A DNA stretch of 64,000 bases from Podarcis bocagei. Lineage: Eukaryota. The stretch's first letter is position 1; each line of letters starts with the position of its first letter. The notes below the pieces were generated by a model that was not told the origin of the DNA, did not search any database, and was given only the letters and a program-made list of their open reading frames with translations. This document shows, piece by piece, positions 4,761 through 40,062 of the stretch. The position numbers and the translations under genes are program-made. The stretch is taken from NCBI GenBank assembly GCA_964188305.1, contig OZ076885.1, one strand, 5' to 3'.

Positions 4761-7700
4761 TGGTGTTTCTTCTCTCTGAGTATGAGGAGTTCATACGTTA
4801 GTCCTTAACTTCAGCATGAGGTATTGCAAGAGTGTGGGCTTTACCCTGGTCAATGTGTTTCATGAATCTGCTTGGTTTCCTCTGACTTCTGCCTATCAAT
4901 CCACGTGTCAGAATAAATGCATGCCTGGTGTGTGGATTCCACCCTACTGTAGGCATTTTGTTTTGCATGAAGATGTTATCATAGCAGTTCAGTGGGCATC
5001 TGGGGTTGACTGACAGCTTTCTGGGGCGAGGACTGCCCAATGAAAAGTTTTCCAGACTATGAATTTTAAAAGGACTCAAATTAAGGCTTTAAATAGCTGT
5101 CACTGTTGTAAACTAGAAAGTAAAAATTAATGAGGCAGGCAGAATGTATTTAATGTGGCTCAGGCAGGAAATGCCACATCAGGCAGGTAGTACTTAATGA
5201 GAAAATCATCTTGAGTTAGTACCAAGTTCAGGGTTGTTGTTGTTTTAAATCACCCTTAGCCATAATTTTTTTGGTCCAAAGCTCTCCAGTGTCATTCAGC
5301 CTACTGAAAGGTTTCAGCACCAGGCTGCTGTAGATCATATAACCAGCAGCAGCATCACAAGTTTGAGAAAACAGGAATGCAGAATTGATCCAGTAATGGC
5401 AACATCAAAATGGCTTTCTGTGTGGTGAACAAGGAAATGGCTATTGAAAATTAGAAAGGAATATGAAAATAATTATTTACACAGCCAAGACCCCTGTGCA
5501 AATTGGTTTAAAAGAAGCTTTTTGCTGGTGTAGTTCACAAACTATTTTCTACCAGGCAATGAGCTTTTCATCCTTCCTGGATCCTGATTAGCTGCACACT
5601 AAAAGCTCACATTTGATTGCAACATACAGTTAGAGTTAGATACTACTGGGATAATAGATAAGCATTTTTATTCTCCCATTCATGCATTTCCAACATATCA
5701 AATAGCTATCAGCTTTTTAGACTCCTGAGCCCTGCTTCCATGGTATAACATTGATCTGAAATCCAACTATGTCAGCAAGGAGAAAACTTAAGCTTTTAGC
5801 TTGTAATAATGAAACGGTGTTGGTTGATCACAAACTCTTACCAGCATAGAGAGCTATGCAAATATGCAGGGCTGGCTGTTATTGGGCAGAAGACACGTAT
5901 TGCTTGCAGCATTAAAAACAGGCAGCTGTTTGTTTCTGTCTTCTTCCCACTCATAACTGGTGAAGTGCGGAAGTGACTGACAGGGCTATGGTCTGTTTTA
6001 CCTCAATTCTATACATCAGCCAAACCTATTAAAATTGAAGCCATAACAAACACATGTTCCAGCTTACATAAGCTTATATATAATGTTTTTTAAGCTCTCT
6101 CTCTCATGTTTCATTTAGTTCTCAGGCTAGAAGGATGCTCTTTATTTCAGCTGCAGTCCATGAACCGTTTAAAGCAGCCACTGGATAGTTAACATCCCAA
6201 TGCAGTGGGATGTTGCAATGTGCAAGGCAAGGAGTGGGATAAGACTAGGTACAAAGGCCTTATGCTAATGCACACTTCGGTATCCTGTTGGTCCTCCAAA
6301 TGCTTTTGGACTACAGCTCCTATTATAGCCCCACATCAGGGCTGTTGGGAGTTGTGGTTCAAAACATCTGGAAGGCATCAGGTTAGTGAAGGCTTTGCTC
6401 GTGCAGGATTGAGAGTCATCATGTTGCAACAGCAAACAGGGATTGCACAACAGTGCTGAGATGAGAAAGTCCCTGCACAGGTTTTGAGACGAATGAAGGG
6501 GGACATGGCAGAGACTGGACAGGTGAATGGTGGTGCTACCCATAAGAATGAGAAGAAGGAGCTTGTACTAGTTTACATGCTAGTGCAGCAGCCCTATAGG
6601 CTGGGTTCCTGGAAGTCCTTGTCCCATTGACACCAGTGGAATGAAGCTACCAGTTATTTTGTCTTAATGATCTTGTGGTTTTCGCTGCCCTTAGGTTTTG
6701 GAAACCCAGCCAGATGGGCAGGGTATAAATAATAAATATTATTATTATTATTTCTGGGTGGTATATGCATTAATGTTTGCCTTCCTTTGGAATTGAAAGT
6801 GTGGTTAATACACAGCAGTTTAAATGTGCTAAGGATGTTGAATGAATATTGAACACATATTCAGTTGTGAGCAAAATTCTCCTTTCTTGCCCACCATTTA
6901 GTCCTCCTGACACCTGTTTTCATAGAATCAACCTCCTTTCTCCACTTCTGCATGGCTTGTGGTTGGGCTGCCTCTCAAAGTACATTCAAACAGCCAAGAA
7001 ATCATATAGATCCTAACAGTGAATTTTCAGCTTGTCATTTAAGACTAGAATAGAGGAAGGAGACTATTTTACACTCCAGAAGGTTAGGATTACTAGATTG
7101 TGAATGTGATGGCATTTCAGAACCCTGTTCTTTCCAGCCACCAGGTTTAATTCTGAAATATTCAATATTTATTGCTCCTCCAGCTGCTCGCCAAAGACAT
7201 GAAAATGCTGTCTTTATTTGCATAGCCTGTTAGCAGAGAATAGTTGTAATAAAAGCAATGGGATGGAAACAAATTCACTTGAGCAAAGCATTTTTTTGTT
7301 TCCTGTGTGTCTGTTCTGTTCTGGTTCTTTAAACAACTCTCCCTCCTTCACTGAATGTGCATTTCACTAAGAATCTCTGCTTGCTAGTAATGCTGCAAAA
7401 ACAGCCTTGTGTTATTAGTGAAGAAGGGATTCTTCAAGTATATATGAATATTTGTTTCTGAGGCAAGACTAAAATATATTTTCCTGCAAACAGGGGTCTT
7501 GAACCTTCTGAAGGATGGGGAATGCTTTTGTTTTAGACCCCACCCCTTCTAATATCACTTAAATTGGAAAGGGGTTGCACTCTAGCAAATGTTTGTTAGG
7601 AGAAACAAACTCCTTCCCCTTTCCCCCAACACTCTAGACCCTCTTTTCTTAAGGGGTTGCAGTGTGGGTCTATATATACTGCTCTCCCAACAATTTGCAT

Positions 7701-9086: not shown

Positions 9087-9473
<387 letters not shown>

Positions 9474-11592: not shown

Positions 11593-13197
11593 TAACTTGC
11601 CCATAAGATGAGAGAAAAGGATGAGAGAAAGGAGGTCTCTGAAGAGCTCAGATGTTTTGGTTTACTTGATTTCTGTCTGTTAGTTCCTGGTGGAGATTTA
11701 GACTAGCAGCAGGTAAGGAAGTCTTTGGACTTTGGAAGCACAATTCAGGTAATTCCCAAAGTTAGACTGGTACATTCAGCCAAGACACATTAGAGACTAA
11801 TATTTTCTTAGGCTGACTGAGGTTATCATCCAGGTGAAAATTGGACTTGACATCCTTGGAGAAAGCACGTGGGTGACCAAGCCCAGCAATGAATTTTGGG
11901 AAGCTGTAGTGGAAAGCATGGCTCCAACTCCATAGTGGAATGCATAGTTAGCGGAGTCATCTGTTGCTTGTACAAAACTGCATGGTAGTCCACATTACTT
12001 CTTCTTTAAGCTACAATTGTAAGCCCCTTGGGTTTATAACTTTCAGAAATACTGTTGCAAGCTGCTCTGAGTCATGCAATAAGGTAGGGCATAGCTCAGA
12101 CATAGCTAACAGTGGTTGCTCGTTCCTCCTATGCAGTAAGAGACTAGCATTTATTTCTTATGTCAGCAAAATCAGCATGCTTGTGATAATATTGTTAGCA
12201 ACCAAAAGTGAAATGATCCTTATAGTAACTATGGTTCCACACACAGAGACCCCTCTCGTGACTATACCTGAGCGCAGCCTGGCTCTGTGTTCATGGGTCT
12301 ATATATACCTAAACTTCCTAATAACAATAGTTTATGCTGTATGGTACTCTGAGAAAGATACCTCAACAAGTATACTTGTCTCAGACAGACAATCCCAAGC
12401 TGTCCTCCCTTTTGGTGCAATTATTTGCACCCTTATCTTGGTGTAGGCCTCATTTAGATCAGTTCTACAGGCTGCAAGTCATGAAAAAATTGTTTTTGTA
12501 TCCTCAAATTTTAACAAAACAAAGGTAGACATTTCAACTAACATATCTAACAATTTTGGATAGGAGAAGACAAAACAAAGGAAAACTGGGGTGGGCCTCA
12601 TCTTCTCTAACCTGTTTAACATACAGCGCAAGAGAACCCGCTGAAACAAAAACCCTATATAGTGTAGTGGAGATTCTATATGTGTAGAGGGCGGCTTCTC
12701 ATACTGCACCTTACCAAGACAGGGCATTAAAAAGATTTGCACCTTCTCTATTTGCAACTTACACAAATCAGGGACAAACGTCTTAAGCTGACAGCTCTCC
12801 TGCTTAGTACTGGTCCAGGAAGTAAGCAGACTAGTGGAAAGGGGAGATGACAGAATCTGTGATGTCCTTTCAAAGTCCTTAAAGAAGATGTTACAGAGAG
12901 GCCTTTTGGAAAATGCACATAGCCCTCATAGTTGCCCTTTACTGCATTTGTGGTGGTGGGAAGTGGAGGTCCTGTCAACACTCCACCTCCTAGTTCTCTA
13001 GTAGAAACAATCTGACCTGGGGGGGGGGGTTAAGTGCATATTTTTGTGGTATGTGCAACTCGTATTAATGTTGTAATTATCAGTTAGTCTAGAATATGAC
13101 TCTAATGATCTCACTTATCAAAGCCTTAGTATGGTATATAAATTGTTTCTTATGCCATGTTTTTACATATTGCTAACTTCAATTATTTATTTCCTAG

Positions 13198-13404
<207 letters not shown>

Positions 13405-14968
13405 TAGACTAGAATAACTGCAATTTTTTTTCCCTATTGGCTGGATCCTATCCTGATAACATTTGAATAACAGCACAAGAAGTGTGGATAATGGAAGGTT
13501 CTATGTCAGGGCCCCTAGGGAGCAGCAGCACGGATAATGGAACCTTCTAACATGATCTGCCACATAATTCTGACGTGAGATCTGACCTTGATGAAGTAGT
13601 CTCCATGCATCACCAGAAATGTATAAGCCAGGCCTAAGATGAATAACAGCATGGTTGCATTTATACTTTCTCTCAAATTTCCCTAGTATTCTCTGTACTT
13701 CCCAAAACCGCTCCGTAGCTTGTTATTGTGGAGCTCATTTGTAAATTCAGTAGTAACAGGACACCTGTTTCTGACTGGGCTGGGACTCCACCATGAACAA
13801 ACAAGCTGAATTCTGAACAAACAGCAAATGACATGGTATCTCTACAGTACATGAGGAGAGGTGGAAACAAAGGCAGATTTGTCTCTCACATACTAGTTAC
13901 ATACTAGTTACATTTCTCTGGGCATTTTATATCCTGAGCCACCACACTTGTTAATCAAGGGACCATTATAACCTTCAGTTCTCAGTAGCTAGATTCCTGG
14001 AAACATGTGTTAAATTTCCCCTTTTGCCATGTTGTTGCTTTTGCATTTTGAAAATCTACACTGGCTCTGAAATCCACAGTTTTCAAGTTGCCTTTGTTGC
14101 TCTGTTCCCTTTTGTGACATTTTCTTTTTTCCCCCTTAAAATTTGGGAGAACATTTTGTACTGGCCATGCTCTGTCCATTCCTCATTACCTCTATCCAGG
14201 GAGCTTTTGTGAACTAAAGAGAACAGTGTATTCGACTAGATTTTTTTATTTTAAAAAATCATCTTTATCAGGACTTCTTTCATATGCATAGTATGGTGTT
14301 AGATGCAGCTAGGTAGTGAGACCGAATTCATCCCAGCAGGTAGCCTCAGATGGACTCCCAAAGTTGCTGGCTCTGAATTTTACAAAGGGCATTTCTTATC
14401 CTTTGGGATTTGCCACCAAACTGAACTATCACAGGTTACTGAGACAAATGTAGGTCCCATGAAAGCTCACAGAAGAAGCAGATGGTTAGTTGCATGGCAA
14501 TATGGTTCTCTTTTTGTGCTCTGGCAACTATTGTTCTCCACCGCCATTATCATCCTCAAAGCAGCAAGGAAACACTATGAAAACATTACATGGCCTGAGC
14601 TTGCGAGGTGATAAGCACCTGCTTTCCTTAGATGTTTGGAAAACTCAGACTAACAGCCTATTGAGAATGGTGGCCATTTGCTATCATTCACTGAAACAGC
14701 AGCTTAAGATTGTCTTTCATCTTCTCAATTTAGCACACACAATTCTTCTATGTCCTACTGGGCACTTGCATCAAGAATATGTATTTTTTGTGGTAAGGAG
14801 AAGAGGACAGGGACAATTGCCCTAACCAAGAGGGGAAATCGTCTTCCAAGAAAGTATCTAAAAGACCTATATGTAGAGAATATGTAGGTTCTAATAGTCA
14901 CTCCCACCCCTCACCTGGCGTCCCCATAACCTTTTGGTGATCCATCTCGCTTTGCTCACGTCCCATGA

Positions 14969-15181
<213 letters not shown>

Positions 15182-16925
15182 TAGCTACGGGCATCTTTAT
15201 TATTATTTTTGGCAGAGTTGGCTTCTTGGCTCCGAATGGCTTTCTGTGTATGTATCATTTTGGGGGTGCAGATGGGGTCAAACACAATCTCACAGTCAGT
15301 GATGTAGTGCAGATCTGTACTTTGGTTCAAGTCAGCGGGTCACTCTCATGGCATTGGGAGCACTGCTTTTATCCACAGGACACAAAGATCTGAATCTCGG
15401 TGGGGGGGGAGTATTTTGCATAGTAATTTGTCATGCATAGTGATCCAGCATCATAACATTCTACATGCCAGCTAATCCATGCTGAATTGCTTTGCTGATC
15501 AGCAACACTGCTGTGCGACTTAGCCTCCTTATTTTGCGAAACAGCATAATTTTAAGAAATAAGACCTGGATGCCGCAGAACAGAAAATGTGCATTCTGTT
15601 TGCCAAATTCTCTGAAAACATTACTGACAGGATGTCCCAAACAGGAAGTTTCCACAGAGCATTGCAGTTTGATGAATCAACTGTTCTTTGGTATCTGAGA
15701 ACTCATCGTAGAGCAAATGGGTTGTGCAGTACAAGTCTCTGCTTGTTCACTCAGAAGTTAAGTCACTCTCAGTTCAGTAAGGTGTTCTCCCAAGTAAGTG
15801 TGTAAGTAGGCCGAAGCTTGAAAGTGGATCCAGAAGTCATGTCATTTCCCTCAAAAGTAGACTAAATGCTAACCTTTCACTAGCTACAGCTTAAGATGGT
15901 GGTGGATAGAAGTTGTGGAGCACCTACTTTTTTCTGGGATACTTGCAGAAAATGCTGAACCTGTTGGTTCTAGTTAGGGTACTCCTCATGTTCTTAAGCA
16001 ATTGTGCATTATCAGATTATGCCTTAATTTTTAAGAGATCCTGAGCATTCACTCTTGCTTTGTGGGCCAGAAGGGTTCCGATAGAAAGTAGACTAATCAA
16101 TACTGAAGCCATGCCTAAATGGACAGATATGCATGTCTGTGTCTTCTAAAGTGAAACAGGGAGCAGTATGGTAATACTTCAGATGTAAACTGCATTTCTA
16201 GAACTCCCCTGTGACATTCCTTTGGCGTTCTGTCATTTTACTGCAACTGCACGATGCAGTTACCTTAAAATCCACTGTACCAGGCAAGGGGTTACTCTAC
16301 ATCTTTTTCCAATGCACACAGCTGAAGTTTTAAAAAGACATCCATTTTTAATCTGCAGTTTTATAGATGGAATATCTGCTAGCTGTGCCCACAGCACAAG
16401 GGGAAGAGCTGTATGCTCAGAAAACACACATGGGACAGCCCTAGTAAGATGTCAAGCACTGGCACTGCAAGAACAGATCTTCTCTGCCTTGCATCTGGGT
16501 TTTGTCATGCCTTTTAACTTCTATATAGTGTCTTCATCGAAATTTAGCTACTTTATTCCTGTGTGTAGAACAGGCACATGGCACTGGCTGTTTACTCCCC
16601 CAGATAAAGCTAGATTTGCCCATCTGCAAGTGGGCTGAGGCTACTGACTGTGGAGTTGTGTCAAAGCAATGTGGACTAGGCTGGTTGCTTGGAAACCAAA
16701 GCTGAAATGGGGAGGTGGGAACGAGTGCCACAGGACTCCACAAAGCCAACCCTGCCGGTCACGTTCTGATCCGAATTCCCAGCTCTCCGCATGGAAATCT
16801 GTTTGGCCTGTCCTGCAATGCATGATGGGAAGTTTTCCCCTCTCTTACCACCCATGACTGTTTTATTTTATTCTGTGTGCTGCTTCTTACTTTATCCTTT
16901 CAACCTCTTCTCCTTCTTTGCACAG

Positions 16926-17011
16926 ATATTATAGGCACGCTAAGGCCGGATGAGAAGGCCATTATGACCTATGTTTCATGTTACTACCACGCCTTCTCAG
17001 GTGCGCAGAAG
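16926..17011 (+). CDS. ACTN1: ACTN1 alternative (mutually exclusive) exon 8b ([29 protein letters not shown])
   Basis: cag|ATA...AAG|gtgag, 86 nt, same phases as 8a, open frame, mostly third-position differences from 8a. Confidence 0.92.
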
Positions 17012-19671
17012 GTGAGACTTTACTCCTAACAAACCCCCTCCTCTTCCTTCTGTTTCCCGCCCACCAAATTTAGAGGCAGATACCCTAAACCGTTAGAGGT
17101 ATGGAATCCAGTGCTGGCTGTCATATTGAGCTACCTAATATTGACACAACTTCCTTAGCATCTTGGGTGATTAAAAAAACACTCTCTAGCTTTGTTGAGA
17201 ACTCAGTGGATATTTTTTTTCAATGTAGTGGGTCTCTCTGCTTTTCCCCAGACAATATTTCTGGCCTAGAACACCCAAGTTGCAGCCTACTGGTTCAAAT
17301 TAATATTGCAGAATATATTCAATACTTTGCTGACAGATCAGATGACTTCCTATTGGAAAGTGCATTGCTAGTTTCAGCTGGGTGCTGGTTTCCTTAGAGC
17401 GCTCTGTTCTCAGTCATTTTTGGTGGCTGATACCACACTGGTCCACCATTGGCAATGCTAAGCCTGTTGGGAGTGTTTTAAAGACCCAGCTCTAGAGTTG
17501 CTTTTAGCCATCAGTAATAATTACTATAGGGCTAAACAACTGAGGTCAAAACTCCAAATGATGCTCAGTTGCAGAAGTTCTCTGATATTTTCCTCCGTAC
17601 TAATCTTTTGCTCCAGACTGTAATTTCTGCAGCTGGATTTAGTTAAGAACATGTTCAAAAAAAGCTATGCATGATTGAGCATCATGCATAGATTGCTCCC
17701 CATTCATGCAACCTAAAACCAATTGTTCAGCAGGGTTTATTTTATAAGCAAGAGGTCTCCGTTATTATTGGCAGTATACCAACGGTGGTCGTTAATTTCT
17801 GAGCAGCTACTTTTCCAAGTGAAGTCAGAAAATTGCCATTCAGCCTTTATGTGGCCATAAAAACAAAATCCCTCTGCTGCTGCTGCTGCTGCTTTACCAT
17901 CAGTGGAATCTGGTCATGTCTACGTGGATATATATAAATGGCCACTTCTGCTTTGACAGGTGTTCTCTCAATGGGAGACCTCAGAATGTCTTGCTCTGTA
18001 GATGCCAAGCTCATGGAATTCCTGCTCAGTTTACTTATTGTTTCATGGCCAAACTCTAGTGATTTGTGTAAGTTGGGATGGCTGTTCTCTTACATCTTTT
18101 TCACACAGCCAGCCTTTGATGCCACAATTGATTATCACAGTCTCTGCATACACCTTTTAACTTTTTCTCTGCCCCACATTGCTTCTCTTTCCTCCCATCC
18201 ATCTGTGTCCTTCCTCTGCCGGTAGTTCTGTTGCTTTCCCTCCTCGTACCATTTACGGTGTCCCCTTACCCTTACGGCTTTTTTATCTATGTAATCATCT
18301 CTCAGTGGATTTATCCTCCCTTGACATTTTGTACTCGTCTGCAAAAATATTTGGCTTCTGTTGGTTCTTATCACGTCTTAGATGCATTTTGAGGGAAAGC
18401 TTTGATTCAAACACACGTGTGTCATTAGCGTTGGCACTGACATCGTGCCTCTATACCTGAGTAAAAGATGCCAAGGGGAAAACAGACCTTAGTCCAGGCT
18501 CCTTGGGCACACATTGGGCAATTAAACTCTGAAAAGGATAGCTGGTAATGTAACAAGACTCTCCTTTACTGAACCAGATAACCATTCCACAAAGTTTTCT
18601 TTCGTGGACCCTATTCTCCATTCTGCAGTCACATTGCATTCCTAACTTTTTCCTATCCCATATTTGTTGGTAGATTCACAGGGGTTTTCAGGCACAGGTG
18701 TAACTCTAAGCTGAACTGAAATATTGCAAACTAAGTTGAAAATGTTCGTTCTGGGGCCTAATTCAAATGTTACTGACATGCCATGTTAGCTGCTGAAAAA
18801 CTGACTTCACTGTGGCCTGCTCCCTTGGGCCTAACTCTCCATACTGAATGAGATGCAACATAGTGTGAAAGGATATCCACCATTGCTATGGGGCTTCTCT
18901 TTCCTCTCTTCTCCACAAGCAAATTTCTGTTGCTTAAGCAGGCAGACAACATCAGATGTCACCAATATTTACAAGCATCTTCTCTGAAAGTACTAAAGGA
19001 CATATTTTGTAGTTTTTAAAATAGGTAGTGACAGCAGACCTTCTAAATATGTATTTTTTTTAAGAATACATTTAATTCACTAATTACCCTTTCAGCACAA
19101 GCTTATAGAAAATCTGGGACATGAGGGTTTCTGCAGGGAGCCTTCAAACTTAGCTCAAAGGCCATGTTTCCAAGTTTTTTTGCCCTGAAATTGTGTAACA
19201 CTGCTCTGGATTTAATATATATCTATCAGACAGCATAGACTATGGATCTCAGTGTTGTAGTGTTTTAGAATGGGGCCCAAGAGCTTTGTTCAGTGGTGGG
19301 GCCTAGTGCCTGATGCCTTGAAACGGCTGATAAGATACAAATGAGAACATCAGTTGCACAACATCTGGATAGTTGTCGGAAGATGAATATATAATCTCAA
19401 GTTTAGCAGAATCCAAAGTTTTATAATATATATATATATTTAATTGAATGCACTGTCAGCTAGCTAGCCAGTGAGCCCAGCAATGAATTCATGACCTGGA
19501 GGAAAGAGTTAGGGTCCCTTTCCCTTTGTAGCAGTCCAAATCTGGGGCTATTGTAGAGTGATTAGCAAGCATGCATTTCGGCCTTGCCCAGGAGCACAGA
19601 GTGTCTTTTCAAGCTCTGCCCTCTTACTTGACAAGGTGACTTACTGTGATGTCGCTCCATTTCTCATTCAG

Positions 19672-19758
19672 ATTTCTCATTACTGCTACCAGCCCTGAAG
19701 GGGAGGTCACATGATCAACTTTCTGCTTCTTTCATTCTCTTATACTGAGTCTTTAAAG
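19672..19758 (+). pseudogene. Candidate degenerate third copy of exon 8 (pseudo-exon / poison exon)
   Basis: ttctcattcag|ATT...TAAAG|gtacag, 87 nt; central part aligns by eye to exon 8a at about 32/45 nt with three 1-nt gaps; stop codons in both usable phases. Confidence 0.5.
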
Positions 19759-22700
19759 GTACAGGGGCCCCAGCCTGCCATGACGTGTATGTGACTGGCT
19801 GCTTTTCCTTCATATGATTTTGTGTGTGTGCGTGTGTGTCTATGTATTTCTACACATATACTTGCTTTGGTCCATTTGCTTTCTTCCCCCCGCCCTAACT
19901 GCTTCCAACTTTAATAACACTAAACTGCATGAGTGTTTTTATTACTAGATGGTTTTAAATAATGTGTTTTTAATACACTGTTGAAGGAGATTCCTGGAAA
20001 TAATTATAGGCAAGTATTTTGATTAAGCTTCCGTTTGATAGGTAGCATTTCAGGATTCCATCATTAATCTGTGATGAAAAGACAAATGTCCACATTGTTT
20101 TATATACCTATTATATTAAGCCTTTCACTCATTCATTTAGACACCAGGGGAGATAGGGAGCCATATCTATGCTGTTCTTTCTTAATGTTGAGACAAAGAG
20201 GTGAGGCATTATTAGCACTATCTAGCCTTACCTGTTCTGTGGGTAGCATCTGGGATTAACAGTCTAGTCGCCTATAGGAAAATACTGTGGGCATGTATTT
20301 GCTTAAGATACATTTTGGACCCATTAATGAAAGTATACCCCTTTTGTTACTGGACAGTGGAACAAATTACCCAAATAAGTTATAAGTCTCTGTACTTGCA
20401 AGTTTTTAGGGGAAATAGCAAGATTCTTAGTAGAGTGAACTTACCAGTACTTTAATATCAGTACTTTAGGGATGTCAGATAGTGGTGGCATAATACAACC
20501 TTTTCCCTCTGCAATTCACATGTATAATATAATACATTTAATTACAGCACCAGAAGAGAACAATTTATATTGTGAATGTTCAAGTGCTGCCAACTTGAAG
20601 TGGCTAAAAGTGTCCCATTTGTTAAAAGAGGCCTGTTCAGTTTGAAAGCTTGCATAGTCCTTTCAGTGGTGGATAAAAGCAGGTTGTTTCTGCTCCAGAA
20701 TTCTGTGCAAGCCCAAAATCTTAGGATTTCTAGAGACCAGCGAATGGTGCTTCAGTGCCCTTTCTAGTTCTGTGATTTGTCGATACAATAAAATATGCAA
20801 AATGAGAAAGTAAAGTTAATGCACATTCAGTTAATTTTCATAATGTTTTAGAATTCAGCTTACCTTGGCATAAAAATAATTGATTATTATTACTTTAAAC
20901 ACCACACATCCCTAAACAAAAAAAAAAAGGTAAATGTTGTCATTTTGGTTTATCTTCTCTGGAGCCACAAGCTTAGTGTTGAATGTGAGCATCAGCATTG
21001 TAGGAAACTGCTTCGGTGTCCTCGCACTTTTGATATGGAAGTTCCCTGTCTTCCAATGGGATAGCCTGACAGGGGTTTTTAAAAGCTATTTACTTATTTA
21101 TTGTAAATATTTTTATTCTGCTTCATCCCTAAATCTGCCCAAGATAGCTATATCAAGATGCTCAGAATGCTCAACTCTGCCAAAGTAAAGGAATTCTTAG
21201 AATGGTTTTGAAATATACTAAGACTTTCACTACAAGAACTCAGCAAGGAAGCTGTTGGAAAAAAATGTCTCCATGCTGTAGATGTCCTGGGTTGGCAGGT
21301 AGATGGTTTCATCCATCTTGGGGGATTGTGATGAGGCACGTAGAACGAGATGGCTTCTCAGATATGTTGGGCCAGAGCAGCCTTCTCTAACCAGCTGCTC
21401 TCAAAATGCTTTAGACTGCAGCTCCCATAAGCCCAGAGCCAGCATTGTCCAGGGACAAGGAACTTCAGGCCTTGGGGTGAAATACAGGATTCTCCTGAAG
21501 GCACACACCCCTCTTTCCCAAGGCCAGACCACTTCTCTGGTCTTACTTCACGACCTCCTTGAGAGTTTTTGCTTGACTGGGAAATGGTGTTGGATTCTGA
21601 AAATGACTTGTTGGCGTGGCTGGAAGACAGAGAGGAGGGTGTTAAGTGGATGTAGAAACTAAGCCTCCTGTACAAAGGTAAAATTGTTCTACCTAGTTTT
21701 GACTGTCCCTGCCCACTGCTGGCATGTTGCCTACAGAAGGAAACACAGCCCTTGAGATGAAAACAGTTTCCCTCCCCTGTTTTTTGTCCAAATCAAACTG
21801 GAGGACACCACTAGAGGCTGCACTAGAGGGTTGGTTTTGTTTTTGTTTTTGCTAGTTCCAGTGAAGTCTAAAAGGAAAATAGAAAAAGGGTTTCAAAGTT
21901 TTAACAAGCAATGGCTCAGCTTTTTTAAAAAATGAAATTATGTTGCTACCCTCTGGAGATCTGAAAAATAATTTAGTGGATATTGTTGCAGTTCAAGTGA
22001 AAGATACAAGGGACAGTTTTGTAGCCTCTTAGGACTGTTGAGCAGTACAACTTTGGACTTCAGGCTTTATTTCTCTTCCTGCTGCCCCCAGTCTGCTCTT
22101 TCATTTAGGCCCTCTGCCCTCATGTAACTTTGAGGCTGAATTGGCAGGTTGGGATGAGTCTGTAGACTACTCAAACCCAATCCTACCTTTGGCGTTAATT
22201 CCTAAAAGTATACATCAGTTATTCTATTTTTAAAAATCTAGTACAATATATGTAATAATGAGAACTCTTGTAAGATTAAGGGAAGTTCATGTTTCTTCCA
22301 AAACCTAAGAGTGTGAGACGATCACAGCAGAGCTACAGTTTCATATGAGAGCACTTTGATAGCTTTGAACATTTGGATATGTATGGAATAGATGTCAACA
22401 GTAGACCTGTGGCTTCACACTTTCTTCAGGGGCAAGTTAGTTTTCGTGAGAAGTGATTCCTTGTAGCACCTCAAAACAGAGGTGGAAGAATAACTACAAC
22501 CAAAATGGAAAACATTGATCGTTTGAGGTGGAAGAACGTTATTCTACAAGCAAAATGGAAACCATTGATCCATTGAGACAAATGGGGTTAGATTTTTACC
22601 TCATTTAGTTTTATAGGATGGTCTTGGAGAAGGTTTGGATAGGCACTTACTTGTTCCAAGAATAATTTTCCACTTTATGCATTCTATCTCATACCAGACA

Positions 22701-22976
22701 CTGATGTGCATAGATATGGATGTGCACGTAAATGGATATGGGCAAGTGTAGAGGGTAAAAAACCTCTTAGGCATTGCAAGTGTACATTCACATCAAAACT
22801 CCCAGAAGAGAAATGATAGCAAGAGCACTTCAAAATCTTCATAATGTGGAGATAAATTTGGACCAGTAACATTCTCTTAGACACAGAGTGGACTGTGCCT
22901 TTCCTAAAAGCATCAAGAAGCTGAAGGAAACATCTTTGTTAACAATGTATTTTTCTTTCTTTCTAAATTTCGGTAG

Positions 22977-23132
<156 letters not shown>

Positions 23133-24095: not shown

Positions 24096-24428
<333 letters not shown>

Positions 24429-31950: not shown

Positions 31951-33291
31951 TAATACTTAAAACTGCCATTTTTTCCTGTTGAAGAGCCTCCTAGTTGGGC
32001 ATTGTCTTTTCATCCTTTCAGTGAAAAGGATTTGTGCTGAGAGAAGTCACCACTCTCTTTGGCCTGGTTTGCACAGCATGAAAACCCAAACCATGGCTTA
32101 CTTACTGGGACTTTGCAAACATGCTAGCTTCCAGAACAAACCTTGGCTACAGACGGTGGCTAAGAAGGAGAGAGCTTAACCATGATCTTGGCTTAGCTGC
32201 AACACTGGGCTGAGCTAAAGGACTGGGGAAGAACAAAGCGGCTGCAATCTCCCCTCCCCTGAGCCAGTATATCTGCGCTAAGCTTTACTTGCAAAGTGGC
32301 CCTTCTTCCTCTCTCCTTACTAATCTTCACAAATACACATGTTCTTTGTTTAAGATACTCAATGGCCAGTGGTTACTTCTTATTTAAAAACCATTCTTAG
32401 ACAAGAAATTATTGAGGGTGGCTTTCTATAATAGAATGCTAAATTAAGTAGGTACTAAATTAACTGAGATGTGCCTTAGGAATAGTTTGTGCTTTGCATT
32501 TTTTGTCTGCATGTGCAAGTTCCAGACTTGCTCCATCTGAATTAGCTTCAGATTGGTTTTAAAACACATACACCACAACTGACTGTAGCTTCAGACCATA
32601 TTGTACGTGCAGCTGTGCATATTTGTTTGGCTGTTGTTTTTTAAATTTGCCTACAGTCTGAGTACATGCAGGGGCATCTGGTCACAATCATAATACACAT
32701 GGTTTTAAAACAATGTGTAGCTCCAGATCTCCTAGGTTCAGGTATAACTGATCTGTAATACGTACCCAATAAATGAACTTACTAACTTAGGGCTCCTCCT
32801 GACTTCCTTTTGAGCTACGTTTCTAGGCACAGTGGATGGCTTTGAGGTTTTCTTCCTGGGCCAGATCATCTCCCCTCTTTGAAATGGATCCAGTGGATCT
32901 ATCACTGCCTACCCCCCCCCCCTCGGCTCTGCCTCCATCCCACACCTGTAATGCCTCATTTCAGAGCCCTATACTAGTTACCACTGGTGGGAACACCACC
33001 AATGATAGCTTCCCAACAGCCTGTGCTTTAGCCATATTGGCCCCAGTCAGCGGAGGGACACCTCCACCTAAGCCCACCAGCAGCACTGAGCAAGGGATTA
33101 GGATAGTTTTGTAACTGTGCTAAAAAGGAAACAAATTTATCTTCTGAAAGCCCTTAACACAGCTGGGCAGGTCTTCAGTTGGTGTTAAATATTTAACTCA
33201 GTAGAGCTGCAGTGAATTATTCCAGCGACTCGGTTTTGTTTACCTGTTCTCTGAAAAACCTGCAAGCAAAGCTCTTTTCCCCTTGAGATGA

Positions 33292-33639
<348 letters not shown>

Positions 33640-34074
33640 TGAGCCAACCAATCCTGCTCTTGATTAAACTGATGTTGGGGAGAAGGGTGCTAAAGTAGTA
33701 GCACTGACTAGCCATGCAGATGTGTACAGATATTGACATACAACACTTTTGGCTAAAGCCTTTACTTGTGCAAATGACAGAGAGGGTGACTGATTTAACG
33801 TTCAGTAGCACAGTCTGGAACCTCACCGGATTCACCTTTGCTTAAGGCCCATAGTTTGCAGCCAAGATAGACTATTTTGACTGTGAGGAATAAGGCCCTC
33901 ACATAATGGGGACTGGCTGGCACATAAGGGGTTACAGGTTTGAGGCAACAACCTTAAAAGTCTAGGAACAACACTGCAGACAAATCTGAGGAGTCCATGC
34001 AAATGTGAGTGGGCAGTCGCTGGAGCTTGCCAGCTGTTTAATTGGTAAGAATTACCAATTAAAGTAGATAGCAT

Positions 34075-34163
34075 GACAATATATTTTTTATATTGTGATT
34101 GCCCTGTGAACTGCCCTGAGACCTCCGGGTATAGGGCAGTATATAAATTCAATCAATTAATAA
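34075..34163 (+). mobile_element. L2-like LINE 3' end relic
   Basis: TGTGAACTGCCCTGAGACCTCCGGGTATAGGGCAGTATATAAAT plus A-rich tail. Confidence 0.55.
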
Positions 34164-34207
34164 GGAATTCTGTGTTAGAAGCAGTTTCTTATCAGCATTG
34201 TCTAAAT

Positions 34208-34754
34208 CAGTGTTTCCCAACCTTTTTTGGGCAACGGCACACCTGTTTAATGAAAAAAATCTCGCGGCACACCACCATTACAGCCCCGTGACGTCAGCGC
34301 GCAGCGTCACGCCGGGAGGGACGCACGAAAGTGAAAGTTTTTAATTTTTTTCCCCTCCCCCTTGCCGGGGAACCTCCAAGCTTTGGGGGTGGGGGGGGAG
34401 GAGGCAGCAGAGCGAGGGACTGAGGGACGGCGGCAGCTGAGGCGGCGGCGGCTGTTGTGGTGGTGGCGGCGATAGCGGGCGGAGGAGGGGGCGGCGGCGG
34501 GAGTTGCTGCTGCTGTTGTTGCTGCTGCTGCCCGGACATGCCGGCCTCCTCCTCCTCCGCTGTCTCGCGCTCCTCCCTTTTGCACGCGCTGCCCCGCCGC
34601 TCGGCACCACCACCGCGGAGCCGCCCCCGGCTCGACGCGGATCCTCGCCGCCGCCGCCTATCACCGCCCGACTCGCCCGCCTCCCTCCCACGGCACACCA
34701 GCCGATGTCTCACGGCACACTAGTGTGCCGCGGAACACCGGTTGGGAAACACTG
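34208..34754. mobile_element. Non-autonomous hAT element (547 bp) with GC-rich cargo
   Basis: 15-bp TIR CAGTGTTTCCCAACC / GGTTGGGAAACACTG; perfect 8-bp TSD GTCTAAAT; subterminal CGGCACAC repeats. Confidence 0.93.
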
Positions 34755-35547
34755 GTCTAAATGTGGGGTGGGAACCTGGGCTTGGGGCTGCATTGCTCCA
34801 GTGGAAAGCTCACCCCGCCCCCAGTTCCTCAAGTGATCAATGCAGATCAGCTAGGAAGGAGGACATTTCTGTACCTACTGCAGTGCCAGGATGGGAATGC
34901 GAATCATTCTTTTTTCATTTCTCAGCTGATTGGCACAGACCATCTGAGGAGCATGGAGGGTCCGATTTCATCCCCATTGCAGCCGGCTGGGTGGGGAGAT
35001 TTAAACCTCCAGTGCATGACAATAGGGATGAAAACTGCCTACCACTCCTTGGCTGGTCCACACATCAGCTGTGGGTGATGGTGGTTTTCTTCTCCATCAC
35101 AGGGTGCCAGGCAGTTTAAACCTCTCTACCCAGGATACCTTGATCAGGAAGAACAGCTGATTGGAGTGCTGAGGAGCAATAGGCAATTTTCATTCCCATG
35201 TAGAGGAAAAACCTTCCACCCAAAGTACCATTCGGTGGATGAAAATTATGCCCTCCCTACTTCTCTGATGGTCCACACCAATGTGCACACACCTGGGGAA
35301 GCCACGGGAGTGCTGTGGATTGCATAGGAAGGTCTAGTGGGCTGGATTAGGCCTACCCTTGTTTTAAATGAAAACCTAGGTCAGCTTTCCCCAACCTGGA
35401 GCCCTCCAGATGTTTTGGACTACAACTCCCATTATCTGCAACCAGCATCGCCATGTGCGTCCTCTCCCTACTGGGCAGCACATTTTCCAAGTCTACAATC
35501 ACTTTACTGCATTTTGACTAGTCTCCAGGTGCTACTTCTCAACTTAA

Positions 35548-35760
<213 letters not shown>

Positions 35761-37065
35761 TAGTAGTGCCTGTAACTTCAGAGAGTTTCTCCATAGAAGC
35801 GAATGGAAACCAAGGCTCAGATTCTCCTTGTGAAACCACAGCTCAAGTAAAACTTTTTAAAAATGTGGCAGAGTCCATTAACATTAAAGCGTTTGGGGAC
35901 TCAAAGGAAATGCTAACACAAACGTTTAAAAACCTTCTCTCTTTGATTTTCAAACCCTTCTCAGATTTAATAGAAATGGCCACATTAACCTAATGAGCCT
36001 CCGTGAGAGTAGCTAATGGTTGTGGGGTTGTTTGTTTGTTGAACTTGATTACATGCCACTTCCTAGCAAAGCTCTTGTATGTTATCCATCCTTTAGAAAA
36101 TGTACAATGATAACTCATTGCAGTACAAATATTCTACATGTGTAAGCTCACAGGTCAGGTATCGCTGTCAGTAAGCCTCTTGTTCAGGCCACACTGTCTG
36201 TGCTTCACGTTCTTCCTTCTGGATTGTTCTTAAGGTTTTTGCCTCAAAAAGACCAAGGCTAACCTTGCATGGAACAATCTTCAGCTCAAGCCACTGAATC
36301 CAGGCAAAATACTGTTATGTCAGCAACAGCACAAAGGAAGACATCTGGCTGCACGGAATGGCTGTAAAAAATGTAGTCACCTCATGCGCTAATAGTGTGT
36401 AGCTTTTAGGCGTGCTCTGTCAAGTCCTCTATCTCACTCGCATTTTAATGTAGCTTATATTCACTATGGGAGTTGTTTTTGTTTGTTTTTTACAATTTAG
36501 AAAATACAAAGGCAAGTTAATGTTGCGTCATATCTCTGGGTAAACGTCTAAGTGAAAGACAAAGGTCTAGTTTTCAGTGCAGGGAGCATCAAGCAGGAGA
36601 CTTGGTCCAAGTTCTGTTGCAAGGATAAACTTTTGGACTAAAAATGGCTGCAGAGTTGGGGCCACTCTAAACTACCGTATTTTTCGCTCTATTGGACGCA
36701 CCGGACCACAGGACGCACCTAGTTTTTAGAGGGGGAAATCAAGGAAAAAAATATTATCCCCCCCCCAGCCCCAAAGAGCAACGGACAGGCTGCATGCAGC
36801 CTGTCCACTTCTCCCAGAGCTTCTCGGGGCTGCAGGGTAAGCCCGGGTTTTCCCCCCCCCCAGCCCCAAAGAGCAAAGAAGCCAAGACAGTGCACGGGAT
36901 CCATAGCCGCGCAACCTCTCCAGCCAGGAGCTAAACCTCTCCAGTGCAGCTAAAGAAGACAAGGCAGCAAGCGCGATCCATCCCGCTCACTGCCTTGGCT
37001 TCTTCTTTAGCCTTGCACAGCATCTTTAGTCTTGTGCAACGGGATGGATTGCGCCTGCTGTCCAC

Positions 37066-37280
37066 CGGGGCTGGACTAGATGACTCCTGGGGTTCCCTTC
37101 CAACCCTGCAATTCTATGACCTCGGAAGGTGTTTGGGGTCTCCACCACTGGAGGCTTTTAAGCAGCGGTTGGGGGACCATCTGCCTGGCGTTCTTTAGCT
37201 GTGATTCCTACATTGTGAGGGGGCTGGGCTAGATGACCCTTGGGTGGCCCTCCCAACTCTATACAGTCCTACAGTTCTGC
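37066..37280 (+). mobile_element. Two CR1-type 3'-end fragments nested in the Tc element
   Basis: GGGCTGG(A/G)CTAGATGAC...CCCT(T)CCAAC...TTCT motifs twice; GGAGGCTTTTAAGCAGCGGTTGG. Confidence 0.7.
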
Positions 37281-37422
37281 GGCAGGAGATCCACAGCCAC
37301 TTCACACAAAGCCCACTCCCAATTTTCACCTGAGAGACATGTGTCTCTCAGTACCCCCCCTACCTGCCACACTTCCCCCACCCCACTTAAGCTGAGGGAA
37401 TTTCTGCCCAGAGAAACTCCCA

Positions 37423-38546
37423 GCAATCAAGGAGGAGGAATCCGCTGCAGCCGTGAGCAGCGGAGGATCCATGGTCCCCTTCCTTCTCTCCTCCGTAGTT
37501 GCTTTGAAGCAGGAAAGTGGGAGAGGAGCTGCTTACACGAGTGTAAGCTGCTCCCCTCCCACATTGCCGCTTCAAAGCAATCACGGAGGAGGGAATCTGC
37601 TGAAGCCTAGAGCAGCGGAGGATCCATGGTCCCCTTCCTTCCCTCCTCCGTGGTTGCTTTGAAGGAGGAAAGTGGGAGAGGAGCTGCTTACACAAGTGTA
37701 AGCTGCTCCCCTCCCACTTTGCTGCTTCAAAGGGAGCCCGGGAGGAGGGAATCTGCTGCAGCCTCGAGCAGCGAAGAGGATCCATGGGTCCCCTCTTTCC
37801 CTCCTCCGTAGTTGCTTTGAAGGAGGAAAGTGGGAGAGGAGCTGCTTACACGAGTGTAAGCTGCTCCCCTCCCACTTTGCTGCTTCAAAGGGAGCCCGGG
37901 AGGAGGGAATCTGCTGCAGCCTCGAGCAGCGAAGAGGATCCATGGGTCCCCTCTTTCCCTCCTCCGTGGTTGCTTTGAAGGAGGAAAGTGGGAGAGGAGC
38001 TGCTTACACAAGTGTAAGCTGCTCCCCTCCCACTTTGCTGCTTCAAAGGGAGCCCGGGAGGAGGGAATCTGCTGCAGCCTCGAGCAGCGAAGAGGATCCA
38101 TGGGTCCCCTCTTTCCCTCCTCCGTGGTTGCTTTGAAGGAGGAAAGTGGGAGAGGAGCTGCTTACACGAGTGTAAACTGCCCCCCTCCCACATTGCTGCT
38201 TCAAAGCAATCACGGAGGAGGGAATCCGCTGAAGCCTCCAACAGCGGGGGATCCATGGTCCCCTTCCTTCCCTCCTCCGTGGTTGCTTTGAAGGAGGAAA
38301 GTGGGAGAGGAGCTGCTTACACGAGTGTAAACTGCCCCCCTCCCACATTGCTGCTTCAAAGCAATCACGGAGGAGGGAATCCGCTGAAGCCTCCAGCAGC
38401 GGAGAATCCATGGTCCCCTTCCTTCCCTCCTCCGTGGTTGCTTTGAAGGAGGAAAGTGGGAGAGGAGCTGCTTACACGAGTGTAAGCTGCTCCCCTCCCA
38501 CTTTGCTGCTTCAAAGGGAGCCCGGGAGGAGGGAATCTGCTGCAGC
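37423..38546. repeat. Tandem array of 7 units of 155/158 bp, each internally palindromic
   Basis: ATCCATGG anchors (ATG at 37471, 37626, 37784, 37942, 38100, 38255, 38410). Confidence 0.97.
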
Positions 38547-39181
38547 TTCCCCCAACTCCCGCAGAAGCCGCGCGCTCTTTAAAGGGGCTGCGCGGCTTCT
38601 CCTGGCTTTTCTGGGAGGTGGGGGGATTCCCCCACCTCGTAGAAAAGCCCGCAGGAGCCGCGCAGCCTTTAAAGAGGGCGCCGCTCTTGGGGGCTTTTCC
38701 CCCAGGAGGGAGAAGGGACTGCTGCAGCCAGTCAGTCCCTTCTCCCTCCTAGAGAAAAGCCCGCAAGAGCGCACGAAGCTTGCGTGCGGCTCTTGAGGGC
38801 TTTTCCCGCCTGCCTCCCCCCTGCATTCGCTCCATAGGACGCACACACATCTTCCCTTGCTTTTTAGGAGGGAAAAAGTGTGTCCTATGGTGCGAAAAAT
38901 ACGGTACATGAACTCGCATGTTCTTCTAAATCCAAGGCTCCTCTAAGCGCAAAGATGCTTCAGCAACAGGATATTCCAAATGTGTCCAATGCTTCTCTGC
39001 AGTCCAGGTGGCTCACTAAATGTTTTGCTTCTAAACTTGTTGAAGAAAATGTAATTGTTTCTAATGAAAAGCAGTCTTCAAAGCAAACATTTGTCCCTGG
39101 CATGGTCATGTTTTGTGAGAAAGAAGTGCAAAAAGAAAAAAAGAAAAGGCAGCATTAGCACAATACGAAATGTGAACACAG

Positions 39182-39388
39182 TATCTAACCTTGTGCACTT
39201 TTTATTTCTTCCCCTGTTTTATTTCCTGCATGCCATTCTCCCCCCCAATCTCTCTCCACCTGCTGCATGGTGCACCTCCTCCTCCTCCTTCTCTCCTTGC
39301 CCCGTTCTTGTTCTCCTTCTCTTCTTTGTCTTATACCACCACCCCACTGGCACTGCATGCCCTGCTGGCTGGCGCACTGCCTAACCAG
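39182..39388 (+). promoter_or_regulatory. AG-exclusion zone and distant branch point upstream of the NM exon
   Basis: No AG from 39182 to the acceptor; TCTAAC at 39184-39189 followed by a pyrimidine tract; three TGCATG and CAC clusters. Confidence 0.8.
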
Positions 39389-39469
39389 GACCACTCCGGC
39401 ACACTTGGCCCCGAGGAATTCAAAGCCTGCCTCATCAGCTTGGGTTACGATATTGGAAACGATGCACAG
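39389..39469 (+). CDS. ACTN1: ACTN1 exon 19a, non-muscle (NM) EF-hand exon ([27 protein letters not shown])
   Basis: cag|GAC...CAG|gtact, 81 nt. Confidence 0.96.
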
Positions 39470-39514
39470 GTACTGAATGCTAGCAAGGAACTCAGGCAAA
39501 TATCAAACCCTAAG

Positions 39515-39996
39515 GGAATAACATATTTCTCCCTTCTCTTCTTTTTTGTTTTAATCCGTCTTGTCAATGTTCTTATATTTTATTGTGCATATTTCTGCAT
39601 TCTGTTGTATGTTCTGTCATAATTCCATTCTTGTCTTTATGCATTGTCAAATCAATTTTTCTCTTCTCGGTTACACATTCCATTTGCTTGATTCCCTAAA
39701 ACTCTTCTTGCCTTCCTTTCTCTTCTCCATTTTTAAAAAAATTATCTTCCTATCGGTACCTTTTTCTTCTTCTTGTTGATCCTTAAACTTTCATCTGCTC
39801 CTTCATTTTCAATGGAATGAATCCATCTCTTTGTTTTCTTCAAATTATTTTCTTATTTTCTTTTGTTGTTCAATATATCTCATCTTCCATTTTTCCTTCA
39901 TGCAAATCCATTCTTTTAACACCTTCCGTGAGTTCATCTCTACTTTCTATTCCTCTCTTTTCCCTTTCATTCTTCCATCCCTTTATGACTGTGTAG
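39515..39996 (+). promoter_or_regulatory. Extended polypyrimidine / AG-exclusion zone upstream of the SM exon
   Basis: No AG 39515-39930, a single AG at 39931-39932, extremely T/C-rich with many TCTT (PTB-type) motifs. Confidence 0.8.
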
Positions 39997-40062
39997 AAGA
40001 AGACTGGCATGATGGATGCTGAAGATTTCCGCACCTGCCTTATCTCCATTGGTTACAATATG
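39997..40062 (+). CDS. ACTN1: ACTN1 exon 19b, smooth-muscle (SM) EF-hand exon (KKTGMMDAEDFRTCLISIGYNM)
   Basis: tag|AAG...ATG|gtaat, 66 nt. Confidence 0.95.

Follow-up and report, generated by a model that had tools for sequence, protein, structure and literature searches.

The question raised by this locus is why an 87-nt segment with the edges of an exon lies between exons 8b and 9 of an alpha-actinin gene. The gene is found on the plus strand of a 64,000-nucleotide stretch of Podarcis bocagei DNA (contig OZ076885.1, assembly GCA_964188305.1), the whole of which is termed here the window; judged from its exon translations, it is of the ACTN1 type, and it carries an intact pair of alternative exons, 8a and 8b. 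The additional segment, named 8c, was regarded in the original prediction as the third member of an ancient triplication of exon 8, without coding function and possibly retained as a switch for nonsense-mediated decay or as a splicing decoy. Analysis of the window together with the ACTN1 loci of four other species indicates that 8c is real and under selection, and that it may be described as a conserved exon of the poison or decoy kind, probably an exon duplicate that has been put to new use.

Conservation of the 8c block

Segment 8c occupies positions 19672-19758 of the plus strand, 2,660 nt past exon 8b and 3,218 nt ahead of exon 9. It is 87 nt long, a multiple of three, and non-coding. The upstream edge reads ...tttctcattcag (ttctcattcag), the segment ends in AAG and the downstream edge is gtacag, so that its boundaries and its distance of 2.66 kb from 8b are as originally read. 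The conserved acceptor region (19634-19671) ends in the AG at 19670-19671, which is preceded by a pyrimidine tract and by a branch-point-like CTTAC at 19640-19644 whose A is at -29. The donor, AAG/GTACAG (19756-19764), is weak. Downstream, the conserved intronic block at 19759-19931 carries UGCU at +42, +105, +119 and +142 and UGCAUG at 19926-19931. The AG-free stretch and the TGCATG site to which attention had been drawn are both present, at 19773-19931 and 19926-19931, respectively. A (TG)n simple repeat at 19821-19846 is located between two conserved parts of this downstream block, its place being taken by (TA)n in the other four species.

The comparison loci were obtained through an exon 10 search of protein representatives, cluster and contig look-ups, and one DNA pattern scan. 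The exon 10 search returned fragments and ACTN4 or ACTN2 representatives, a homologue search from fish ACTN4 listed only fish ACTN4, and the metagenome pattern scan yielded only species already in the comparison set; the intron is missing from contig L003 and from L004, an ACTN1-like contig of chum salmon, both of which begin too late in the gene to include it. The four other species are represented by L001 (the same species as L008), L007, L009, and L002 (the same species as L005 and L006), and the alignment of the window with these four is referred to as A3. The introns of L001, L007, and L009 are 88-89% identical to one another, and those of L002 are ~80% identical to them, a pattern that would fit neoavian birds plus a galliform, as we infer from the identities. 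The depth of conservation is expressed here as sequence divergence between the window and these loci: constitutive exons share ~89% identity, and the difference at 4-fold degenerate sites is 35-38%.

It can be observed that the stretch 19634-19931 aligns at 74-76% identity, with E values of 1e-50 to 1e-56, in the ACTN1 loci of all four other species. Exon flanks aside, this is the sole conserved non-exon stretch in the ~17 kb from exon 7 to exon 13, the introns being otherwise unalignable, and it nearly coincides with the segment and flanks under study here. Conservation of the 8c block is far beyond chance. In A3, 8c is 87 nt long without a gap in 5/5 species. Most columns of the acceptor region are invariant, among them CTTAC, which lies 29 nt upstream, as well as the AG and the pyrimidine tract; likewise invariant are the donor GTACAGG, a TGA triplet within the segment, and extended stretches, CTTTCTGCTTCTTTCA being one of them. 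The window differs from the other lineage at 12-14 of the 87 sites of 8c (14-16%) versus the 35-38% at 4-fold sites, corresponding to approximately 1/3 of the 4-fold-site rate of the neighbouring exons. Among L001, L007, and L009, the segment differs at 1 of 87 sites, the introns being ~11% apart. Within the same lineage, the three-way identity of 8c is 0.92, compared with 0.72 for background intron and 0.91-0.97 for constitutive exons. Downstream, UGCAUG is found at +138 to +168 in 5/5 species, and 3-4 UGCU motifs are common to all. Segment 8c and its splice signals are therefore under purifying selection. Retention for a function, which had been put forward as a possibility, is now strongly supported by the conservation of the exon, its splice sites, the branch-point region, the stop, and ~170 nt of downstream intron.

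The constraint does not have the form expected of a protein. Variable sites of 8c fall on codon positions 1, 2, and 3 in the numbers 8, 5, and 3, without a third-position excess, and no reading frame of the segment is open in all five species. Constraint on 8c is therefore not on protein, and the segment is non-coding, as had been proposed for the third member of the exon 8 group.

Splice sites were scored with a rough matrix, to which all splice-site scores given here refer. The acceptor of 8c scores 4.8 and its donor 0.54, both within the range of the real exons 7-10. The donor is weak, yet not below that of exon 8a, which scores 0.22. Over the whole window and both strands, only 3 segments of 85-87 nt have both sites scoring at least as high as those of 8c, namely exon 8b, 8c itself, and a real exon at 9130-9216.

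Other kinds of element were considered for the same block. A recursive-splicing exon was rejected, the acceptor being followed by ATTTCT or ATTTTT, with no rebuilt donor (AG/GTRAGT). A structured RNA gene was also rejected: no Rfam family matches the 8c block and no covarying helices were seen in it, the covariation term being -0.4 kcal/mol. In duplex predictions, pairing of the block with the conserved flanks of 8a or 8b was no better than that of shuffled sequences. In L001, the block is spanned by a public gene-caller prediction on the minus strand at 5592-5819, a "protein" of 75 residues interrupted by a stop; a search of the protein collection for relatives of this minus-strand reading frame matched only itself.

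Reading frames and resemblance to exon 8

When 8c is read after 8a or 8b, it gives ISHYCYQP followed by a stop, the TGA at 19696-19698 being its ninth codon. This TGA occupies the same codon in 5/5 species, and CCTGAAGGG is invariant in A3. When the segment is read in place of 8a/8b, it gives (D)FSLLLPALKGRSHDQLSASFILLY followed by a stop. Both readings thus end prematurely, in accordance with the original prediction. In the species compared, replacement of 8a/8b by 8c leads to a stop or a frameshift: the window and L001 both carry a stop in the 8a/8b frame, and the 87-nt length shifts that frame in all five species. As a functional mutually exclusive coding exon, 8c was rejected. More than 10 exons follow 8c in the gene according to the exon translations, and with 8c included, translation would end prematurely, far ahead of the last exon junctions.

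An invariant ATG is located at 19711-19713, in the frame of the TGA and five codons past it. In each of the five species, this frame is open to the end of the segment and extends from there into exon 9. Read from the sequence, the start context is weak, and by our own estimate an open run of 16 codons after the ATG would be expected by chance about half the time. For these two reasons the ATG is not taken as a start site, and is treated instead as a remnant inherited from exon 8a's Met codon.

Resemblance was measured to exon 8a (15006-15091, plus strand, 86 nt, ending in AAG), which is the closest match of 8c, and to its alternative, exon 8b (16926-17011, plus strand, 86 nt, likewise ending in AAG). 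The core of 8c aligns with 8a at 30/40 identities with three 1-nt gaps, in line with the alignment originally made by eye. With 20,000 dinucleotide shuffles of this single pre-chosen comparison, p = 1e-4 was obtained for global and 4.5e-4 for local alignment in the window. In L001 and L002, 8c shares 58 identities with the 8a of the same locus (shuffle p <= 5e-5). It ranks first among 33,000-40,000 positions scanned over the two strands, scoring 15 and 17 where the null maxima are 8 and 11; the same scan gave chance maxima of 7-9 in L010 (an ACTN4 locus) and L011. When 8c is compared with each of the 18 coding exons in the window, the match to 8a is the strongest by a wide margin, followed by that to 8b. 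In placement, 8c agrees with the exon 8 cluster as to strand and intron; in length it does not, at 87 versus 86 nt, so that the phase differs.

Several results weigh against descent from exon 8. Similarity to 8b is weak, with p = 5.5e-4 for global alignment and no significance for local alignment. A minus-strand chance locus at ~6330-6420 (near 6336) matches 8a equally well, and in the scan of the window 8c ranks top only for the summed scores of 8a and 8b. In nhmmer, neither the 8c profile nor the combined 8a and 8b profile retrieves the other at a significant level (E ~5). No 8c-like element was found in ACTN4 of the bird Aegotheles albertisi (L010), or in the compact teleost-like ACTN1 contig L011, in which 8b and exon 9 are present. 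Furthermore, the several lineages do not constitute independent tests of the similarity between 8c and 8a, since a chance likeness would be inherited. The shuffle check proposed for the segment thus succeeded as a single comparison and was equalled by one locus once extended to the window, where the similarity taken alone is borderline. As for the ancient triplication itself, the best match to 8a and the shuffle p <= 1e-4 speak for it, the profile search and the equal chance locus speak against it, and descent of 8c from an exon-8 copy is judged probable, not proven.

Two further observations belong to these searches. The 8c profile also weakly matches the minus-strand locus at ~6330-6420, with an E value of 1.2; this locus was used as a yardstick of chance. 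In L011, an 8b-type exon lies at 1118-1203; the contig extends 1.1 kb upstream of this exon, and no second exon-8 copy is found there.

Regarding the wider setting, all on the plus strand, exon 7 is located at 13198-13278, exon 9, which begins at a codon boundary, at 22977-23069, and exon 10 at 24156-24386. Exon 8b starts 1.8 kb after 8a in the window and 1.35 kb after it in the other lineage; the corresponding distances from 8a to 8c are 4.6 and 3.4 kb. Exons 8a and 8b are identical to those of the other lineage at 84/86 and 83/86 sites, compared with ~89% in constitutive exons, and both are 100% identical within that lineage. Their intron flanks are also conserved, extending ~60 nt upstream and ~130 nt downstream of 8a (window 14945-15223), and ~190 nt upstream and ~30 nt downstream of 8b (window 16738-17043). 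Such identity and such flanks are typical of tightly regulated alternative exons. If 8a and 8b were both included, the beginning of 8b (16926-16934) would read ATA TTA TAG, a stop at its third codon, and double inclusion would therefore also be unproductive. Separately, 12 runs of 79-148 million letters, labelled "RNA? (a guess)", contain 29-53% of the words sampled from window 13190-23100, mostly intronic, a share that exceeds the expectation for low-coverage DNA of that size.

A candidate poison exon and competing explanations

Taken together, the invariant splice signals, the exact length, and the stop common to five species suggest that ACTN1 has in 8c a conserved cassette exon without coding function, the likeliest role of which is that of a poison exon, a reading in which we place more belief than doubt. 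In the mechanism proposed, 8c would be recognized weakly, a good acceptor being combined with a donor that appears deliberately weak, which would result in low or regulated inclusion. Once spliced in after 8a or 8b, the segment would stop translation at its ninth codon. Since many junctions separate this stop from the last exon, the transcript would be directed to nonsense-mediated decay, and ACTN1 output would be reduced. Judging from the UGCAUG and UGCU motifs downstream, the level of inclusion may be set by tissue-specific RBFOX- or MBNL-type factors, the assignment being based on the known motif preferences of these proteins. With regard to origin, 8c would represent a third tandem copy of exon 8 in which the reading frame was lost. 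We infer from sequence the inclusion of 8c in RNA, the decay of the product, the regulators, and the descent from exon 8.

A more extended scenario joins these elements: a third copy of exon 8, already present in the common ancestor of both reptile- or bird-like lineages, would have become a stop-carrying switch through which RBFOX or MBNL factors shut off the non-muscle alpha-actinin-1 in muscle or neurons, and which would be distinct from the human ACTN1 cassette already listed in the literature. As a whole, this scenario is doubtful.

The main rival to the poison-exon reading is that 8c serves as a splicing decoy or intronic control module. Such a module would bind the splicing machinery and RBFOX- or MBNL-type factors, steering the choice between 8a and 8b or the removal of the long intron, and would rarely or never be present in stable mRNA. 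It should be noted that the conserved splice signals and downstream motifs fit this explanation equally, that the donor is not only weak but conserved as weak, and that 8c is situated in the intron common to 8a and 8b, whose own flanks are strongly conserved. However, an invariant in-frame stop and a length of exactly 87 nt are features that a pure decoy would not obviously require, and neither significant base-pairing with the flanks of 8a or 8b nor covariation was detected; we consider a decoy unlikely. A different possibility is that the block is a conserved non-exonic element, such as an enhancer or another element acting at the DNA or RNA level, with splice-like edges that are coincidental. 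Conservation by itself is indeed no proof of splicing. Nevertheless, conservation here starts at a branch-point-like motif and pyrimidine tract, the AG and GTACAGG are invariant at an exact spacing of 87 nt in five species, and Rfam offers no match, all of which renders this explanation quite improbable.

Coding use of 8c would take one of two forms, either a truncated product consisting of the actin-binding domain with an 8-residue tail, or a protein without that domain initiated at the ATG at 19711. The length divisible by three and the continuation of the ATG frame into exon 9 in 5/5 species are compatible with coding use. Against this, three positions of the 8-residue tail are variable, the third codon position has no excess of substitutions, and the start context is weak, with 16 open codons expected by chance about half the time according to our own estimate. 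Coding use is thus regarded as very improbable. Finally, 8c might be no more than a chance resemblance to exon 8 within neutral intron sequence, as the equal match of the minus-strand locus to 8a and the non-significant nhmmer profiles would allow. Neutrality, however, is excluded by the deep conservation of 19634-19931 across species, and neutral intron sequence was rejected as a candidate, leaving the chance explanation scarcely credible.

Comparison with known systems

Alpha-actinin-1 is a major cross-linker of actin, and dominant human variants cause platelet disease. If the poison-exon reading is correct, a deeply conserved stop-carrying exon in this gene would represent built-in dosage control outside the well-known cases of splicing factors, and a spare copy from an exon duplication would have been reused for regulation instead of decaying. 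The 8c block also marks a place where intronic variants could alter gene output. The literature searches made here turned up nothing on a third exon 8 in ACTN1.

A related arrangement is that of the mutually exclusive 8a/8b pairs of ACTN2 and ACTN4, which belong to the same exon family and have the same position and 86-nt size as the ACTN1 pair. Unlike the members of these pairs, 8c is 87 nt long, has no open frame common to all species, and has no counterpart found in bird ACTN4.

In the LeafCutter2 preprint on unproductive splicing, ACTN1 is among the genes with conserved poison exons, the exon being adjacent to exon 8 in human and other vertebrates. According to its supplement 4, the human ACTN1 cassette has a length of 85 nt; 1.53 kb separate it from the preceding exon 8 (86 nt) and 7.1 kb from the exon that follows. 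It has a mean phyloP of 5.27, with no coding constraint. Like this cassette, 8c is located in the same gene and the same intron region, is conserved at the nucleotide level without coding constraint, and would be unproductive if included. The two differ in size and position, the human cassette having 85 nt and lying 1.53 kb after exon 8, and 8c having 87 nt and lying 4.6 or 3.4 kb after 8a in the two lineages. Compared by position, the human cassette looks more like 8b (86 nt; 1.8 or 1.35 kb after 8a) than like 8c.

A further comparison is offered by exons 18N and 18A of SCN8A, a duplicated, mutually exclusive pair in which one copy has a conserved in-frame stop. SCN8A's fetal and non-brain isoform is cited in the LeafCutter2 preprint as a conserved poison exon. 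As in that pair, 8c would be a stop-carrying tandem copy without coding capacity, an unproductive alternative retained across vertebrate classes. In contrast to SCN8A, the stop-carrying copy in ACTN1 would be a third one, accompanied by two intact alternatives to which it bears weak similarity, and its use in RNA is putative.

Genes for SR proteins contain ultraconserved poison exons, which are autoregulatory in splicing factors. These ultraconserved exons are also named in the LeafCutter2 preprint. Segment 8c resembles them as a stop-carrying cassette in which both the exon and the flanking intron are conserved without coding constraint. It differs with respect to autoregulation: ACTN1 is a cytoskeletal gene, and any control of 8c would therefore come from other factors.

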